Sequence record: NC_019538.1
Length of the DNA stretch: 64,000 nucleotides
Reading direction: 5' to 3' (one strand)
A program made the position numbers and the translations under genes. The notes below the pieces were generated by a model, which saw nothing but the letters and a program-made list of their open reading frames with translations, ran no database searches and had not been told where the DNA came from. Positions 5,795-27,859 of the stretch are shown one piece after another (position 1 is the first letter of the stretch; each line of letters starts with the position of its first letter).

Positions 5795-6730
5795 ATGTCA
5801 TTATTTGACAATCCAGATCTTGGGCTAACTGGCGAACCCAATATTCAACTAATAGATTATAGCCAAATAGTAATTTCAAATTTGATGTTTTACTTCAAAC
5901 CGGAAGATATCATCACTCCAAAAATCATTCGTAATATCATCATCGATGCATTGCGTTCTCATGTTTTGAAAAACAAAAATGATTATCCAAATATCATTAT
6001 TGCAATAGATTCCGTTGATGGATATTGGCGACGGGATGTAGCGCCGTATTATAAAAAGAGTCGGATCGCCAAAAAAGAAGAAAGTGGTTACGATTGGAAA
6101 GCTATTGGTGAAGCAATGACCGAAGTTCGGAAAGAAATTGCGCAATACCTTCCGTATAAGACTATTTATGTTCCGGGTGCAGAAGCAGATGATATTTTTG
6201 GTGTTTTGATAAAATACTTCAAAGAGAAAGACCCAGATGTTAAGATACACATAACGTCAGCAGATGGAGACTTTACCCAGCTTCAAAAGTGGAAAGGTGT
6301 TCGTCAATGGAACCCAATGCATAAGAAATGGGTTAAACCTGAACATGGTAGCGCCCAACGGGATCTCCTTTATAAAATTGTAAAGGGTGATACCAAGGAC
6401 TCCATCGCAAATATCTACTCTCCGTCTGACCTTATTTATAAAAATAGTCTTCTGGAAAAAGAAGACCGAGTGAGACAGAAATCAATTCGAAAAGAATTGC
6501 TGGCAAGTGTATTTACTGCCAAGGAACCAAAATCGCTTTTTGAAGGTGATGTATTGGAAAGATTTGAAGAAAATGAAAAATTAATTGATTTTAACTTCAT
6601 CCCCGATGATATTTCTGCTAAAATACTCACAGAATATCATTCTTTCAAAGTTCCAGCTCGTGGTAAAATCACAAATTACTTTATCTCTTCTGGTATGTCA
6701 GAAATGATCGGAAAAGAATCTGAATTTTAA
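5795..6730 (+). CDS. rnh: RNase H / 5'-3' exonuclease
   Basis: IDYSQI, YWRRD..PYYK..R, EADDIFG, SADGDFTQL, KGDTKDSIAN motifs of T4 RNase H. Confidence 0.95.
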   Translation: MSLFDNPDLGLTGEPNIQLIDYSQIVISNLMFYFKPEDIITPKIIRNIIIDALRSHVLKNKNDYPNIIIAIDSVDGYWRRDVAPYYKKSRIAKKEESGYDWKAIGEAMTEVRKEIAQYLPYKTIYVPGAEADDIFGVLIKYFKEKDPDVKIHITSADGDFTQLQKWKGVRQWNPMHKKWVKPEHGSAQRDLLYKIVKGDTKDSIANIYSPSDLIYKNSLLEKEDRVRQKSIRKELLASVFTAKEPKSLFEGDVLERFEENEKLIDFNFIPDDISAKILTEYHSFKVPARGKITNYFISSGMSEMIGKESEF

Positions 6731-21364: not shown

Positions 21365-22084
21365 ATGAAAAAGCGGTTTGTTAGTTTTGCTATCTTAGGT
21401 GCGATGTGCGCTATTAGTGCGGTACAGGTTAATGCCGCATCTTTTGATTGTGAGAAAGCATCAAGCAAAATAGAACGAACTATTTGTACAGACGAACGTT
21501 TGAGTGAATCAGACGAGAAACTAAATTCTGTTTATAAAGAAGTTCGAAAAATTAACCCGGCGATTATTGAAGGTCAGCGGGATTGGGTCAAACGTCGTAA
21601 TAAAGCATCTTCAATCGAAGAACTCGACCAACTTCATGAAACACGGATCCAAGAACTTGAATCCATGCTTAAACCAATCATCGAACAAGATGATGAAAGT
21701 GTATTCACTCGTTCCGAACAACCAAAAATCAAGAAAGTGTCTGTTGTTGAAAATAAAAACGTAGTGAAAGACATTAAATATTATATCGATGAAGTACAGC
21801 GCACTGGTGGAATGACTAATAAGGATGGATTCTTTTCCGCAAAAGAAGTGGGTAAGGGTTATCCTAGTTGGTTAAAAGGTTGTGGGATGGTTGTGGGTGA
21901 AGCACACGGTACAAAATATTTCATTAGTGACGCCAAGAAATATGGTCAATTTGATATCTATATCCAGAATGAATTGAGCTTTAAAACTGTCGCGGCTAAT
22001 ATCATGATTAAAAATATGGTAGATTCCGTAAAAGGCGATCTAGGTCTTGTTAAAATTATGTGTGATTCCGGAGAATTATATTAA
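21365..22084 (+). CDS. secreted LprI/DUF1311-like (lysozyme-inhibitor family) protein
   Basis: Sec signal MKKRFVSFAILGAMCAISAVQVNA|, then ASFDCEKASSKIERTICTD.RLS..D..LN.VY...QRDWVKRRN, the typical LprI/DUF1311 pattern; extra C-terminal domain. Confidence 0.7.
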   Translation: MKKRFVSFAILGAMCAISAVQVNAASFDCEKASSKIERTICTDERLSESDEKLNSVYKEVRKINPAIIEGQRDWVKRRNKASSIEELDQLHETRIQELESMLKPIIEQDDESVFTRSEQPKIKKVSVVENKNVVKDIKYYIDEVQRTGGMTNKDGFFSAKEVGKGYPSWLKGCGMVVGEAHGTKYFISDAKKYGQFDIYIQNELSFKTVAANIMIKNMVDSVKGDLGLVKIMCDSGELY

Positions 22085-22362: not shown

Positions 22363-23235
22363 ATGGCATTGAATTATGTAGAAGAACCAGTAGAAAAAGA
22401 AACTAAACCAAAAAAGTCTACTGCGAAAAAACAAAAAGAACTTGACCTTGGGGTAATCAACGAAATTGTTGATGCTAATACCGCACCAGAAGCAAAGGCT
22501 AAAATTCAAGCATATGCTAAAGAGTGTGGATTTAAAATTAGCAAGTCTAATACTTCTGTTGACGATATGATCGTCAAACTCCTTGAAATGGCGGACGCCA
22601 AAGAGAATGAAAAACTGGATCTTGCACCAGAACCAAAAGAAAAAACCCCTTTTATTGAACCTGTTGTAGTCGATGATGAATTCGACGTTGTAGATGAGGT
22701 TATTGAACTTGGTGTGGTTGAATCAATCAAAATTGATGATGGGGTAGTTAATATAAATACTCCAAACGATGTGAAAATTGAATTCACTCCACCAAAACCA
22801 CTAGAATATGTTGATGCTTCTGGGTTTAAAACTCTAGACGAATTAATTGAAGATGAAAAGACGTTTGTTAAAGAAAAAATGAAATCTGAAATTGAGGAAC
22901 CAAAGGATGATTGGTCTCCAATTGCAGGACCAGAGCGCGGTTTAATCCCATCGTTAAAGAATAATCAAAACCAATATACCAGAGAACCAGATTTGACCTA
23001 TGGTTTCAAACCAAAAGTAAATCTAATTGGTGCAGTTGGAAACCAATACCTTAATTGCCCATATTGGATTCTTGATTGGATTCTTGAGAAGGGGCCGACT
23101 TGGAAGAGTATTATTGATACTCATGAACGTGAACCGGATAAAGCACTTCTGAAAACAGTTCTTTATTACATCCAGATTAATGGCAGCGTGACATTGCGAG
23201 AAAGTCGAAATTCTCGTTTCCATACCATTTACTAA
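22363..23235 (+). CDS. inh: inhibitor of prohead protease
   Basis: EAKAKIQAYAKECG.KI.K..., acidic middle, NLIG....CPYWI..WI...PTWK, YYIQINGSVTLRESRNSRF. Confidence 0.9.
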   Translation: MALNYVEEPVEKETKPKKSTAKKQKELDLGVINEIVDANTAPEAKAKIQAYAKECGFKISKSNTSVDDMIVKLLEMADAKENEKLDLAPEPKEKTPFIEPVVVDDEFDVVDEVIELGVVESIKIDDGVVNINTPNDVKIEFTPPKPLEYVDASGFKTLDELIEDEKTFVKEKMKSEIEEPKDDWSPIAGPERGLIPSLKNNQNQYTREPDLTYGFKPKVNLIGAVGNQYLNCPYWILDWILEKGPTWKSIIDTHEREPDKALLKTVLYYIQINGSVTLRESRNSRFHTIY

Positions 23236-23240
23236 TATCT

Positions 23241-23265
23241 AGCCATCCTACGGGGTGGCTTTTTT
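23241..23265 (+). terminator. terminator after inh, identical over 24 bp to the one after gene 34
   Basis: AGCCATCC-TACG-GGGTGGCT-TTTTT. Confidence 0.85.
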
Positions 23266-23316
23266 GTATCCCTAAATACTAATTGACCATTTTGGTCAAT
23301 ATAATAAGGGTGTTTA

Positions 23317-23538
23317 ATGGAATACAATTTCATCGAAGTTAATGAAAATATTTTTGTTCTTACTGGATATTTCGGATCTTATAATTTGATTGAGAGATGG
23401 AAAAGACTTGAAGAAGATGACCATTTAATGATCGTGAAGATAAAGGAATATTTGGAGAGGGGAAATATTGTGGTTGTACATGATGTACAAGAAGATTTAT
23501 TCGTTAAGCTAGATGGAGATAAATTTTACGTTTTTTGA
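23317..23538 (+). CDS. small hypothetical protein (late promoter upstream)
   Basis: 73 aa; AAGGGTG SD; CCCTAAATA at 23270-78. Confidence 0.6.
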   Translation: MEYNFIEVNENIFVLTGYFGSYNLIERWKRLEEDDHLMIVKIKEYLERGNIVVVHDVQEDLFVKLDGDKFYVF

Positions 23539-23584
23539 TTTCGTATTGTATCAGACACTACGAATGTTTTTAACTTTTATACTT

Positions 23585-23609
23585 AGGTGATCTCTCGATC
23601 ACCTTTTTT
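23585..23609 (+). terminator. rho-independent terminator
   Basis: AGGTGATC-tctc-GATCACCT-TTTTT. Confidence 0.7.
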
Positions 23610-23642
23610 GTATCTTTTATATACAAAAATAATTAGTTTCAC

Positions 23643-23671
23643 TTGCAATCAAAGTATAAAATCTCTATAAG
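23643..23671 (+). promoter_or_regulatory. sigma70-type promoter
   Basis: TTGCAA-17 nt-TATAAG. Confidence 0.65.
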
Positions 23672-23683
23672 TATTTATATAGA

Positions 23684-23753
23684 AGATCTATAATTAGAAA
23701 GTGTGAGCGAAGCGAACAGGCGGCTACGCCGTCTCACTACGTTCGAGATCTAT
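23684..23753. other. GC-rich structured non-coding element in AT-rich flanks (candidate origin or ssDNA signal)
   Basis: AGATCTAT direct repeats at 23684 and 23746 bracket GCGAAGC (+ strand), GCGTAGC and ACGTAGT (- strand) triloop motifs and a GGCG-GCTA-CGCC stem. Confidence 0.5.
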
Positions 23754-23791
23754 TTATTTATAATGCTATTTAGGTGTGTTAAAATACTATC

Positions 23792-24352
23792 ATGAAAAGG
23801 AAAATTGTAACTCTTATAGGAACCAGATATCCTAATGAAGAGTATAAACAGTTGATGATAAGAATTGGAAAAGCTTTTTCGGATCGTGGTTATGGTGCTA
23901 GGTCTGGTGGTGCCATTGGTTCTGATACACTTTTCCTAACCGAATATGACCCAACATTAACCATTGTATATCGTCCTGATGATAGACCCGGTTGTGTTAA
24001 TGTCAAAAACCATGAAAACTATTATGAATTTGAATTGCTTGCTTCCCGTGTTCATGGGTCTGGAGTTGGCTGGGAATTTATGCCAATCGGTCACCAAGAA
24101 TTACACGCTCGGAACGTTCCTCAAGTTATGGGATTAAACCTCAAGTCTTATTCTGACTTAGTTGTATTTTGTGCAGAGGAATCGATACATGGTACTGTAT
24201 CTGGTGGAACTGCTACTGCGGTTAAAATAGCAAGAAGCCTAAATATACCTACCCTAAACATTATGAACCCAGTTCAAAGATCAAAACTTTGTAAATGGTT
24301 GGGTATTGATGATATACCAGTATTAGAAAAGGTTGACATTTTCAATCTCTAA
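23792..24352 (+). CDS. stand-alone SLOG-superfamily (DprA/Smf/YspA-like Rossmann fold) protein
   Basis: LIGTR..., RSGGAIGSD, LHARN..QVMG, SDLVVF, SGGTATAVKIA...IP..N. Confidence 0.75.
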   Translation: MKRKIVTLIGTRYPNEEYKQLMIRIGKAFSDRGYGARSGGAIGSDTLFLTEYDPTLTIVYRPDDRPGCVNVKNHENYYEFELLASRVHGSGVGWEFMPIGHQELHARNVPQVMGLNLKSYSDLVVFCAEESIHGTVSGGTATAVKIARSLNIPTLNIMNPVQRSKLCKWLGIDDIPVLEKVDIFNL

Positions 24353-24390
24353 ATATTGTTGTGGAATAATAACAATAAACGAGGTTGAAA

Positions 24391-24735
24391 ATGAAAAGCT
24401 CACCACGTAAGATCGCCAGAACTGCGCATGATGCGATTCGACGGTTTAATTTAATACTAGGCGACACCGATACATTGTGGAAAGAAGAACCCGAAAAGGT
24501 TAAACGGGTCTGGACTAAACATGTAACATATATAATCGACCACCCTGATTCTGATGCTCGAACTGTTCATGAGCTTTGGAGAAATTATAAAGAGGGAGAA
24601 GGTTGGATATTTGGTGAAGATAAATCTAGAGACGAGAAAACCCATCCATGTTTGACATCTTACGATGAACTACATGAAATAGAAAAGATGAAATATTATA
24701 TTTTCATCGAAACTGTTCTTGAGCAATCAAAATAA
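24391..24735 (+). CDS. stand-alone RyR-domain protein
   Basis: HELW...K..EGW.FGEDK..DEKTHPCL.SYDEL...EK.K..IF; ATG 24391 after GAGG; CTAAATA at 24349-55. Confidence 0.8.
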   Translation: MKSSPRKIARTAHDAIRRFNLILGDTDTLWKEEPEKVKRVWTKHVTYIIDHPDSDARTVHELWRNYKEGEGWIFGEDKSRDEKTHPCLTSYDELHEIEKMKYYIFIETVLEQSK

Positions 24736-24770
24736 AAAAGCCCCGACCTAAAAAGGTTGGGGCTTTCTTT
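24736..24770. terminator. terminator between the convergent RyR gene and gene 24
   Basis: AAGCCCCGACC-taaaaa-GGTTGGGGCTT with A/T tails. Confidence 0.75.
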
Positions 24771-24813
24771 TATCCAGAATAAAGCTTCTACGTCTTTTTA
24801 TCTGGAAAATTAA

Positions 24814-26043
24814 TTATGCGTAATCTTTCATTTCAACCATACACATACGAGCCAATTGAGACTTGTTGGCAGCACCTACCCAATCTTCCCCATCATATAC
24901 CTTAGCAGGGTTGGATTCAATTTTTCTGAAATCCGGGCTAGTAGATAGAGCATATCTTGAGATAATACCAACCACTGGTTGTAGCGCATCTGGATCGGCA
25001 GCAACCATAAAAGTGCCTGCTTCATCTTCTTCAATATATGGACTGTAATAAACAGCACTTACTGTATCAACACCTTCATCAAATTTAGCCTTAACACCAA
25101 CCAGCATATAATGGACTGGGGTTTTTGAATCAACAACCAATTTCATTTTAGTACCGATAATTCGGTGTTGATCGTCAACTAATCCAGACGTTTGAATAAG
25201 TGCGGCCACATGAGCAGAAGCAAGAATATAAGTCGGTTTGAATGTGGTATCCAAAGTAATTTGAGCAGCCATACGACACGCACGAGCAACAAGATCACGA
25301 CCAGCAAAATATTCAGTGGTTGCTACATTGTACGGAGTTGCTTTAACCTCTTTAGATGCAACGGTCACCAGCTTCATGATAATATCGCTGTTAATCTCTT
25401 CTGCAATGGCAACAGACAATAGATCTTCTACTGCTGCATCACCATCCATATTCATACCACCCATATCTTGAAGAAGTTCAAGAGTGATGTTAGATTTTAG
25501 TTTGCGACTACGAACAACGGATTTCCATTTGTTCATTACATATCTGGTTTTTTGGATTTCTTTATCTTCTTGGGTGTTCGGTACAATAGCATCAACAACA
25601 AGACGAAGGTTACCAGTAAAGACATTCTCAAAAAGAGAATTCAAATCGCCGGAATAATCACCATCATTGATAACTTGGAACACATAACCTTCACTGGCAA
25701 AATATGCTTTTGATACCATACCAGCACTACCAGCGGGTAATGCAGAAACGGCTGCCATATCAAATTCACCACCATAATTACGGTTATCAAGGTTAATATC
25801 CCGATGACTTTGATTGTCTTCGCTAATATACTCGTAACGTACACCAAATACGTTTGCTACTGGGTCTGTAGTTGGTTGAACACCAGCAAGCTCATCATAA
25901 ATTTTATTAAATGTTTTGCGAGTTAGTGAAACTAAAGAAGGGCGACCAGTTACGATATCACCACTACTAGATTCAACCAACCGCCCGGACATACCAGACT
26001 CTTTAATTAGGTCTTGTATTTTTTTGGAGACTACTTTAGCCAT
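24814..26043 (-). CDS. 24: capsid vertex protein gp24
   Basis: GRPSLVSLTR, VQPTTDPVANVFGVRY, KW...VRSRKLK, LQPVVGIISRYALS; downstream of gene 23. Confidence 0.9.
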   Translation of the reverse strand: MAKVVSKKIQDLIKESGMSGRLVESSSGDIVTGRPSLVSLTRKTFNKIYDELAGVQPTTDPVANVFGVRYEYISEDNQSHRDINLDNRNYGGEFDMAAVSALPAGSAGMVSKAYFASEGYVFQVINDGDYSGDLNSLFENVFTGNLRLVVDAIVPNTQEDKEIQKTRYVMNKWKSVVRSRKLKSNITLELLQDMGGMNMDGDAAVEDLLSVAIAEEINSDIIMKLVTVASKEVKATPYNVATTEYFAGRDLVARACRMAAQITLDTTFKPTYILASAHVAALIQTSGLVDDQHRIIGTKMKLVVDSKTPVHYMLVGVKAKFDEGVDTVSAVYYSPYIEEDEAGTFMVAADPDALQPVVGIISRYALSTSPDFRKIESNPAKVYDGEDWVGAANKSQLARMCMVEMKDYA

Positions 26044-26176: not shown

Positions 26177-27859
26177 TTAGGCACCCAGAACACGTACACG
26201 ACGGTAGAAGGAGTTCTTACCGAAGATTGCAGCACCCGGCATACCGGAAGTGATCTTGGAGAAGCCTTTGTTCTTGGAACCGTCAGCGAACGGGTGCAGT
26301 TTAACACCGTAACGGGTCTTGAAGCCAAGAATGGTAGCGAAGGACTTAGGATCCACACCACGCAGCGGGCTCAACGGGATGTATGGGCAGTAGTACAGAC
26401 CTGCATCCAGTTCGGAGCTACCCTTGAAGCCTACAGTGAAGTAATCTTCAACAGCGTACTGGTCGATGAAGACACGATACTTACCAGCCAGAACACCAGC
26501 GAACTGAGATACAGAGGTATCAGTGTTCAGCTTGGTAGTACCAGCAGCAGCCGGAGAAACCATCTGGTCGGTGGAACCGAGCATTACAGCAACGTTACGG
26601 GAACAGATTACGAAGTTACCGTTACCACGACCGGTTTGACGACCGATTTCAGCAGCTTCCTTATCGATTTGGGTAACCAGAGCCTTGGCGCTCTCACCTT
26701 GCCAACGAGCACCGCGAACGTCGTTCGGGTCTGCAAAGTTAAAGACACCAGCTTGTCCGCCATGTTGGTTAGTCCAACCAGTCTTACCGATTTGGGCGGT
26801 AGCGTTGATCCACAGGATCATTTCGCGGTTGATTTCCAGCATGATTTCGTTAGCCAGAATGCTGGACAGTTCGCTATCTGCATCCAGACCGTGAACGTTA
26901 CGCAGATCCTGAGCCAGTTCGATGGAGTACTGAGCTTTCAGTTGACGAGCCTTAGCTTCAACTACTTGCTTATCAATACGGAAACTCATTTCAGGCCACG
27001 GGTTATTGCTGGAACCATTAAAGTTCTCTTGCAGTTCCGCCATGGAGGTAGCCATACCTTCACCGATTTCAACCGCGATCTTGTCGTGGATCAGTTTCAG
27101 GTAACCAGCGGTTTTAACGTCAGCAGCAGTACCAGCAGTATAAGCGGTAACGAACTGAACAACCTTAGTACCGGAGTTGGAATAAGCGTCTACTTCTTCA
27201 TCCAGTTGGAAGCGAGCCAGATCACCGATTGCATAGGTTCCGTCTTTATCAAAAGCAGGAATCAGCGGAGCAGTGGCACCACGACCAGAGAAGCTGGAAT
27301 CAGGTGCATATTGCGGGTGGAAAGCTTCGCGAGCTTGAGCATCCAAAGCATCAGTACCATAGATGGCACGGAGGGTGAATACTTGACCAGCAGAAGAGGT
27401 CATCGGCTGAACACCACAGATATCAAAGGCAATCAGGTTGCTGATAGCACGACGAGCCAGACCCATAACAGCCGGACCGACGTTGGTGATGTTACCGGAA
27501 GCTTCACCAGAGGCGATCTTGATAGCATCATAACCGTGGTCACCGACGATGTTAGCTTCGGTCAGCATGGTTTCCATCTCTTCGCCGGACAGTTCGCGAC
27601 CTTCTGCCAGAGCAGCGGCTTGAGCTTCGTTCAGCATCTTTTTGGCTTCTGCCAGTTGAGCTTTACGACCTTGTACGTCAACCATGGAATCGATTACGGT
27701 TTGGTCGGTATATGCAGCACCGTCGTTACTCTTGATGTCTTCATATTGGTTTTCCATCAGACGAGCGACGATATCCTTGCGCTTCATGGTAGCAATTTCC
27801 GGCATACCTTCTTTTTCAAGCAGCGGTTTCCACTTAGCGATAATAGCGGTCTTAGACAT
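26177..27859 (-). CDS. 23: major capsid protein gp23
   Basis: KWKPLLEKEGMPEIA, LTEA.I.GDHGY, AFDICGVQPM, WPEMSFRIDKQVVEAKARQLKA.YSIELAQDL..VHG.DAD. Confidence 0.98.
   Translation of the reverse strand: MSKTAIIAKWKPLLEKEGMPEIATMKRKDIVARLMENQYEDIKSNDGAAYTDQTVIDSMVDVQGRKAQLAEAKKMLNEAQAAALAEGRELSGEEMETMLTEANIVGDHGYDAIKIASGEASGNITNVGPAVMGLARRAISNLIAFDICGVQPMTSSAGQVFTLRAIYGTDALDAQAREAFHPQYAPDSSFSGRGATAPLIPAFDKDGTYAIGDLARFQLDEEVDAYSNSGTKVVQFVTAYTAGTAADVKTAGYLKLIHDKIAVEIGEGMATSMAELQENFNGSSNNPWPEMSFRIDKQVVEAKARQLKAQYSIELAQDLRNVHGLDADSELSSILANEIMLEINREMILWINATAQIGKTGWTNQHGGQAGVFNFADPNDVRGARWQGESAKALVTQIDKEAAEIGRQTGRGNGNFVICSRNVAVMLGSTDQMVSPAAAGTTKLNTDTSVSQFAGVLAGKYRVFIDQYAVEDYFTVGFKGSSELDAGLYYCPYIPLSPLRGVDPKSFATILGFKTRYGVKLHPFADGSKNKGFSKITSGMPGAAIFGKNSFYRRVRVLGA

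Follow-up and report, generated by a model that had tools for sequence, protein, structure and literature searches.

What two small neighbouring genes do for the T4-like Aeromonas phage CC2 (Straboviridae, Emmerichvirinae, Ceceduovirus), and whether they act together, is the question raised by the locus described here. The window that we analysed was a stretch of 64,000 nucleotides from record NC_019538.1, taken on one strand, and a window position equals the NC_019538 record position minus 124000. One gene encoded a stand-alone SLOG-fold protein and the other a protein with a RyR domain. The first-pass annotation of the window had proposed that the pair formed a two-component cassette directed against immune signals derived from ADP-ribose, with one component expressed early and the other late. 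We found that the RyR protein was a member of the RyDEP family outside its glycosidase subtype, that the SLOG protein likely had a DprA-type pocket, and that the two genes probably formed an operon restricted to one phage lineage. The sequence at 23200-24850 was 100% identical to CC2, and the same region was present at 95-98% identity in fourteen related Aeromonas phages. Both co-oriented open reading frames, 38 nt apart, corresponded to RefSeq coding sequences (F485_gp017 and F485_gp016), and all the motifs that had been read in them (GTR, SGGAIGSD, HARN and SGGT in SLOG, HDAIR and KYYIF in RyR) were found in the translations.

The RyR protein matched PF02026 at 41.8 bits (gathering cutoff 27.4) and also phrog_5154. 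Its AlphaFold2 model (predicted local distance difference test score, pLDDT, 95.8) consisted of four helices, and all the top Foldseek matches were RyR domains, such as the B. thetaiotaomicron RyR protein and the R12 domain of human RyR3, in a fold library that did not include PDB entry 35TM. That entry was recovered by phmmer against PDB sequences, together with RyR R12 domains and a Bacteroides RyR protein. The protein whose structure it reports is RyDEP (gp78 of mycobacteriophage DyoEdafos), and BLASTP aligned the CC2 protein to gp78 with E = 2e-8 and about 30% identity across 64 residues.

RyDEP has been described by Lopez Rivera et al. (bioRxiv, May 2026; PMC13232231) as a PF02026 protein that neutralises the 2' and 3' cyclic ADP-ribose (2'/3'cADPR) signals of Thoeris. 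As an inverting glycosidase, it breaks open 2'cADPR and 3'cADPR at their ribose-ribose bond (PMC13232231). Its catalytic dyad consists of H75 and D117, W78 stacks on the adenine, H100 holds the phosphates, and D117 additionally contacts the terminal ribose (PMC13232231). The ADP-ribose that results supplies the NARP1 enzymes encoded on either side of RyDEP in DyoEdafos (PMC13232231). Thus, phage RyR-only proteins that cleave cADPR isomers, which had been mentioned at first pass, do exist. Among the other phage RyDEP homologues, six of eight bind 2'/3'cADPR without cleavage, and two of these six protect phages as anti-Thoeris sponges (PMC13232231).

The likeness between the CC2 protein and RyDEP comprised the PF02026 domain, the small four-helix stand-alone architecture and three residues of the pocket, since H75, W78 and H100 of gp78 aligned to H60, W63 and H85 of CC2. 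The difference was in the catalytic dyad, where D117 aligned to Y102 in a part of the alignment that was free of gaps. In an alignment of 139 RyR-only sequences, H60, W63 and H85 were invariant. The Y102 column contained Asp in 129 of the 139, and Tyr was confined to the CC2 clade (CC2, ZPAH1, phage 65 and three metagenomic relatives). This clade departed from the family at three more near-invariant columns, namely I16 (Asn in 125 sequences), S79 (Asp or Asn in 129) and H95 (Pro in 126), and the D14 column was occupied by Glu in 124. The strings HDAIR and KYYIF were thus divergent from the family norm, as had been noted at first pass. Within the clade the special residues were retained at 72-81% identity, which argues that the RyR protein is functional and its pocket remodelled. 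Asp was found in 77 of a further, separate 80 IMG/VR RyR loci, and Tyr occurred in CC2, in phage 65 and in the unrelated contig L181 (IMG/VR 3300015615_000215, gene at 5827-6339), which kept the remaining consensus pocket residues. Since Tyr was present both in the CC2 clade and in this unrelated contig, the Asp-to-Tyr change arose at least twice. Apart from this one metagenomic sequence, all the homologues sampled beyond the CC2 clade had Asp at the position.

With Tyr102 in the place of the catalytic Asp, the CC2 protein was predicted to be a binder or to have an altered ligand, and not to be a glycosidase; judging from its residues, it is most likely a non-hydrolytic binder. The predicted behaviour is that of the sponge-type homologues from Ruegeria and Pectobacterium phages (H4 and H7 of PMC13232231), namely non-catalytic sequestration of 2'/3'cADPR. 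The homologues that we inspected, from Ruegeria V12 and Pectobacterium Nepra, whose identity with the tested proteins H4 and H7 was unconfirmed, keep the Asp and the usual pocket, whereas the CC2 clade departs at four near-invariant columns. A shifted ligand preference was therefore a live alternative, because D117 contacts the terminal ribose and the inspected sponge-lineage homologues have kept this Asp. The loss of the catalytic Asp in a PF02026 member agrees with the first-pass suggestion of a catalytically dead sponge or a different ligand; from this loss and the retained contacts we infer the binding itself.

Two longer relatives were also encountered. In LKA5_045 (L013:3995-4867) and Marshall_85 (L010:4452-5324), the RyR domain formed one end of a 290-aa protein, the N-terminal end in the former and the C-terminal end in the latter. 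The LKA5_045 gene had structural genes as its neighbours, and it is annotated as a minor head protein in one related record from a Salmonella phage. These longer RyR-containing versions may be packaged in the virion.

The SLOG protein belonged to phrog_768 ("DprA-like", E = 8e-52) and scored below the cutoffs of Pfam DprA (PF02481, 18.4 vs 29.6 bits) and TIGR00732 (15 vs 191 bits). It was also below threshold for PADLOC ShosA, with a match limited to residues 3-47 (E = 1.5e-4). Sequence searches of solved structures returned no close relative. The AlphaFold2 model (pLDDT 95.2) was matched by Foldseek first to H. pylori DprA (E = 2e-6, template modelling score, TM-score, about 0.53), followed by ShosA, the molybdenum cofactor (Moco) carrier protein, LOG proteins, the SLOG domain of ThsA and YpsA. 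The ThsA SLOG domain (7uxs), ranking below DprA, was matched with E = 1.8e-3, a TM-score of 0.45 and 9% identity. DprA and ShosA were the best sequence and fold matches, and both pocket motifs discussed below were present; the differences were that the CC2 protein is a single 186-aa domain without the flanking domains of DprA or ShosA, that its scores were under the cutoffs and that the TM-score was about 0.5. A link to the RyDEP phage through gp89 of DyoEdafos ("DprA-like") was rejected because this protein was not significantly similar to CC2 SLOG (E = 0.11).

In an alignment of 91 SLOG homologues, G39, A41, G43, D45, R107, G138, G139 and T140 were invariant, and G10, R12, S38, N108 and Q111 were nearly so. 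According to Wang et al. (PMC3950713), the DprA domain that binds single-stranded DNA (ssDNA) is characterised by the motifs G-S/T/A-R and F/L/Y-x-x-R-N/D, in contrast to the LOG motif P-G-G-x-G-T-x-x-E. Both DprA motifs were found in CC2 SLOG as G10-T11-R12 and L104/R107-N108. It had no Pfam match to LOG (PF03641) and read S-G-G-T-A-T-A-V-K, without the Glu. Since both DprA motifs were present and the LOG motif was not, a DprA-type nucleobase pocket is likely. A DprA-like ssDNA binder was the contrary outcome named at first pass, and the evidence on it was divided, the two pocket motifs speaking for it and the sub-cutoff family scores and missing flanking domains against it.

The SLOG family was large. 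A full HMMER scan yielded 1573 representative clusters at E <= 0.001, which were mostly stand-alone proteins of 160-200 aa; word-based searches with single proteins recovered close relatives only. Matches were present in 1392 of 50,697 phage records. Some relatives were fusions, with NADAR in P0059, P0063 and P0120 and with DUF4326 in P0079, and larger relatives also carried DUF488-N3a plus DUF7831. As a side observation, all five of the proteins P0059 (1488 aa), P0063, P0120, P0079 and P0092 combined at least one SLOG domain with NADAR, DUF4326, or DUF488-N3a plus DUF7831, and P0059 had the appearance of a polyvalent protein with several SLOG-type regions.

The neighbours of SLOG genes were surveyed within 5 kb on either side of 80 IMG/VR loci, which were found with an alignment of 15 sequences and formed 48 lineage groups at 60% identity. 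NAMPT was nearby in 14 loci (4 lineage groups), RNA ligase 2 (Rnl2) in 10 (4 groups), PhoH in 9 (6 groups), a Macro-like protein in 9 (3 groups) and a metallophosphoesterase in 7 (4 groups), and gp23/gp24 were found near SLOG in 11 loci from 7 groups. Viral SLOGs with the kind of fusions described above for the larger relatives were predicted by Iyer, Burroughs, Anantharaman and Aravind (2022; PMC9503650) to sense or degrade cADPR-like signals. The CC2 protein resembled the SLOGs of that study in being a stand-alone phage protein with relatives that carry NADAR and DUF4326 fusions and lie near nicotinamide adenine dinucleotide (NAD+) salvage genes; it differed in its RyR partner, a domain unmentioned there, and the SLOG function given there is a prediction. 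Our literature search found no paper reporting a tested phage SLOG protein. The connection between SLOG and ADP-ribose made at first pass was supported here by context only (NADAR and DUF4326 fusions, NAMPT and Macro-like neighbours) and had already been predicted in PMC9503650; the protein also had both DprA ssDNA motifs. In Cronobacter phage leB (L017:2938-4552), the SLOG gene directly followed and slightly overlapped the RNA ligase 2 gene, with NAMPT 1.3 kb downstream. This arrangement may explain why the SLOG protein is annotated as a "putative RNA ligase" in some records.

The linkage between the two genes was narrow in range and stable within it. RyR matches were present in 280 phage records. 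Of the 80 SLOG loci, 3 had a RyR gene no more than 5 kb away, all of them from Aeromonas T4-like phages, and of the 80 IMG/VR RyR loci, 5 had a SLOG gene no more than 6 kb away. Four of these five were adjacent pairs from Aeromonas T4-like phages; in the fifth, on a jumbo contig, the genes were 3 kb apart. RyR occurred without SLOG in Pectobacterium Nepra, Salmonella Marshall, Pseudomonas LKA5 and Vibrio Kuja, and in Ruegeria V12 the RyR gene and a SLOG gene were separated by 8 kb. On the other hand, the order of SLOG followed by RyR was kept in CC2, ZPAH1, Aeh1, PX29, phiWae14, phiAS5 and one metagenomic contig, with a spacer of 35-39 nt. The pair spanned several genera of these Aeromonas phages, and the small open reading frames that flanked it differed among them. 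Between CC2 and Aeh1, identity was 41% for SLOG, 33% for RyR and 45% for gp24. A pair and spacer that remain stable despite such divergence and changing flanks fit long co-inheritance as a unit. Thus, SLOG and RyR were co-inherited in Aeromonas T4-like phages and were probably co-transcribed. The two-component cassette proposed at first pass was weakly supported. Linkage did not recur in unrelated phage lineages, and in phage 65 the SLOG gene was split beside an intact RyR gene; the "cassette" was a lineage-restricted operon, and functional coupling of its products is unproven.

The pair was flanked by terminators (Table 1), the scan of the region detected none between SLOG and RyR, and terminator-like sites were enriched there (4 observed vs 0.9 expected). 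Therefore, the two genes likely formed one two-gene transcript, in which a GAGG sequence was placed 6 nt 5' of the RyR ATG. The temporal staging proposed at first pass, with an early promoter for SLOG and a late box for RyR, was not sustained. Sigma-70-like matches in the region were not above shuffles (5 vs 7.2 expected), and the candidate upstream of SLOG was absent from the promoter scanner's own list. Late promoters were searched for with the exact 8-nt T4-type consensus. Exact boxes were found 9 times across the window (6.3 expected) and never on the plus strand near the RyR gene, where the nearest similar site was a 7/8 match at 24347-24354 overlapping the SLOG stop codon. With no exact plus-strand box nearby and a window count near expectation, a separate late promoter for the RyR gene was rejected. 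Two exact late-box-like octamers were seen on the minus strand upstream of SLOG (23672-23679 and 23755-23762), oriented away from the pair; the window-wide count was not above chance.

The positions of the promoter candidate and of the leader hairpin that follows it were conserved in phage ZPAH1, which does not establish the timing class of the promoter. The leader counterpart in ZPAH1 had another sequence and still folded as a hairpin (z = -2.6). In CC2 this hairpin was located in an AT-rich leader and was unique within the window by repeat search. An Rfam scan of 23200-24900 gave only sub-threshold matches, which were driven by the terminator, and the leader hairpin had no Rfam match.

Table 1. 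Positions of the SLOG-RyR pair, its transcription signals and its neighbours in the window
Feature	Position	Strand	Remarks
inh	22363-23235	+	upstream of the pair
Terminator-like hairpin	23585-23604	+	8-pair stem followed by a T-run; closes the upstream unit (small open reading frame 23317-23538) and forms the 5' boundary of the unit of the pair
Candidate sigma-70-like promoter	23643-23671	+	TTGCAA-17 nt-TATAAG; weak; read from the sequence, block conserved in ZPAH1
GC-rich hairpin	23703-23737	+	presumed SLOG 5' leader; -17.6 kcal/mol, z = -1.4
SLOG gene	23792-24352	+	186 aa; RefSeq F485_gp017; phrog_768; DprA-like clade, stand-alone
SLOG-RyR spacer	24353-24390	+	38 nt; carries the RyR ribosome-binding site; without terminator
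RyR gene	24391-24735	+	114 aa from ATG; RefSeq F485_gp016; PF02026
Strong hairpin terminator	24737-24766		between convergent RyR (+) and gp24 (-); 13-pair stem with 7 G-C pairs, followed by a T-run
gp24	24814-26043	-	head gene, downstream and convergent
gp23	26177-27859	-	head gene, downstream and convergent

The pair is located in the variable inh-gp24 region of the phage genome. In this respect CC2 differed from DyoEdafos, where RyDEP lies inside a NARP1 operon, since the CC2 RyR gene adjoined SLOG near the head genes and the NARP1-like genes were about 84 kb away. These genes were at 60.1-64.2 kb of the record, outside the window, and encoded homologues of DyoEdafos Adps (33% identity, E = 4e-28) and Namat (37% identity, E = 3e-89). 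Beside them was a gene for a gp30.3-family protein (Pfam Phage_30_3, a profile that also matches NADAR regions). Given the NARP1-like and gp30.3-like genes, CC2 has other counter-defence genes connected with NAD+ and ADP-ribose. The Adps-like, Namat-like and gp30.3-family genes were found together at positions 60133-65079 of the CC2 record (L102:10133-15079), and they look like a module for NAD+ reconstitution.

The explanation that we favoured, to which we assigned an even chance, was a two-gene unit in which RyR is a non-cleaving signal binder and SLOG is a nucleotide-pocket protein, with cooperation between them possible and not required. Both small proteins represent nucleotide-pocket families tied to conflicts between phages and bacteria over NAD+ and ADP-ribose. 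RyR would most likely bind an ADP-ribose-based immune signal, either 2'/3'cADPR or a relative, without cleavage, since the His/Trp/His contacts were kept and the catalytic Asp was replaced by Tyr, and such binding would be expected to blunt Thoeris-type defence. The SLOG pocket would most likely hold a nucleobase or nucleotide moiety, which could belong either to a soluble ADP-ribose derivative or to a nucleic acid. Outside Aeromonas T4-like phages the two proteins are separate modules. Several observations weighed against this explanation. The Tyr-variant RyR may be a poor binder of cADPR isomers or have another ligand, because the replaced Asp contacts the terminal ribose in RyDEP and was kept in the inspected sponge-type lineages. 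No ADP-ribose-specific feature was shown in CC2 SLOG, which carries both pocket motifs of the ssDNA-binding DprA domain. SLOG-RyR adjacency was not found outside Aeromonas T4-like phages among the 80 SLOG and 80 RyR loci from IMG/VR, and in RB49 a SLOG gene without RyR adjoined gp24. In phage 65 (L005), the SLOG frame was split over two frames and the RyR gene was intact. The SLOG homologue of this phage, located between inh and RyR, was covered nearly end to end with at least one frameshift, which reflects either a pseudogene or a sequencing error.

Some of these observations would be expected if the genes were neighbours by descent only, a rival account that we regarded as possible though somewhat unlikely. 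According to it, SLOG binds single-stranded nucleic acid in the manner of DprA and serves the DNA or RNA transactions of the phage (recombination, repair, or work with RNA ligase 2), and RyR acts alone. The signature residues G10, R12, R107 and N108 of DprA were invariant or nearly so across the SLOG family, DprA was the top sequence and fold match, and SLOG was found alone by gp24 in RB49, after the RNA ligase gene in leB and within 5 kb of Rnl2 in an eighth of the surveyed loci (10/80). The split SLOG frame beside an intact RyR gene in phage 65 and the occurrence of RyR without SLOG in 75 of 80 loci also fit this account. However, the SLOG protein was far under the DprA cutoffs and had no flanking DprA domains, its family's fusions to NADAR and DUF4326 and its NAMPT and Macro-like neighbours point to ADP-ribose chemistry, and the pair and its spacer have persisted through deep divergence while the flanks changed.

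This persistence could also be read as a sign of a two-step pathway, in which one protein captures a cyclic ADP-ribose signal, the other cleaves it and the ADP-ribose is recycled by NARP1-like enzymes; for example, SLOG could be the hydrolase in place of the Tyr-variant RyR. The operon-like arrangement conserved in Aeromonas T4-like phages is consistent with such a division of labour, viral SLOGs have been proposed to cleave the ribosyl linkages of cADPR-like signals (Iyer et al., PMC9503650), and CC2 has NARP1-like genes of the kind that RyDEP feeds in DyoEdafos. We nevertheless considered the pathway doubtful. The pairing is older than the Asp-to-Tyr change, since the Aeh1, PX29 and phiAS5 pairs keep the Asp, and SLOG is therefore not a replacement for a lost RyR activity. 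Moreover, linkage did not extend beyond the Aeromonas T4-like lineage, SLOG had no LOG-type catalytic motif, and the NARP1-like genes were distant. A related proposal, that the Tyr-variant RyR was retuned to an ADP-ribose-derived signal other than 2'/3'cADPR and is paired with SLOG for capture and processing that feeds the NARP1-like NAD+ rebuilding enzymes, was likewise an improbable one in our estimate. Least credible of all, and in our judgement very improbable, was an orphan antitoxin mimic, i.e., a SLOG protein that imitates a ShosA-type DprA-like antitoxin and so counteracts a ShosT-like host toxin. ShosA is itself a DprA-like antitoxin, its PADLOC profile was weakly matched and its structure was at rank 10 in the Foldseek search. 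Against such mimicry, the similarity was limited to a shared first strand-helix-loop, ShosA is a protein of about 300 aa with extra domains that needs RecA and ssDNA binding, and nothing related to ShosT was seen in the gene context.

RyDEP proteins were described only recently as a means by which phages silence Thoeris signalling, and the CC2 locus provides a natural variant of them with Tyr in the position of the catalytic Asp. The replacement was found in a single clade of Aeromonas phages and, as a separate event, in one metagenomic contig. In the CC2 clade, other conserved positions have changed along with it in a coordinated way, and the variant is a ready test case for what makes a family member an enzyme, a sponge or a protein with an altered ligand. 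In addition, a gene of the RyDEP family here shares a conserved operon with a viral SLOG gene. The RyR half of the pair is a variant of an already known family, and the SLOG half belongs to a family common in large phages whose role is only predicted. If the two proteins cooperate, the pair would offer a first way into the function of phage SLOG proteins; otherwise the locus is an ordinary island of accessory genes.

Elsewhere in the window, positions 21365-22084 encoded a phage protein of 239 aa whose N-terminus resembled a signal peptide and which matched PF07007, the domain of the LprI lysozyme inhibitor (28.4 bits vs a cutoff of 22), and phrog_4675.

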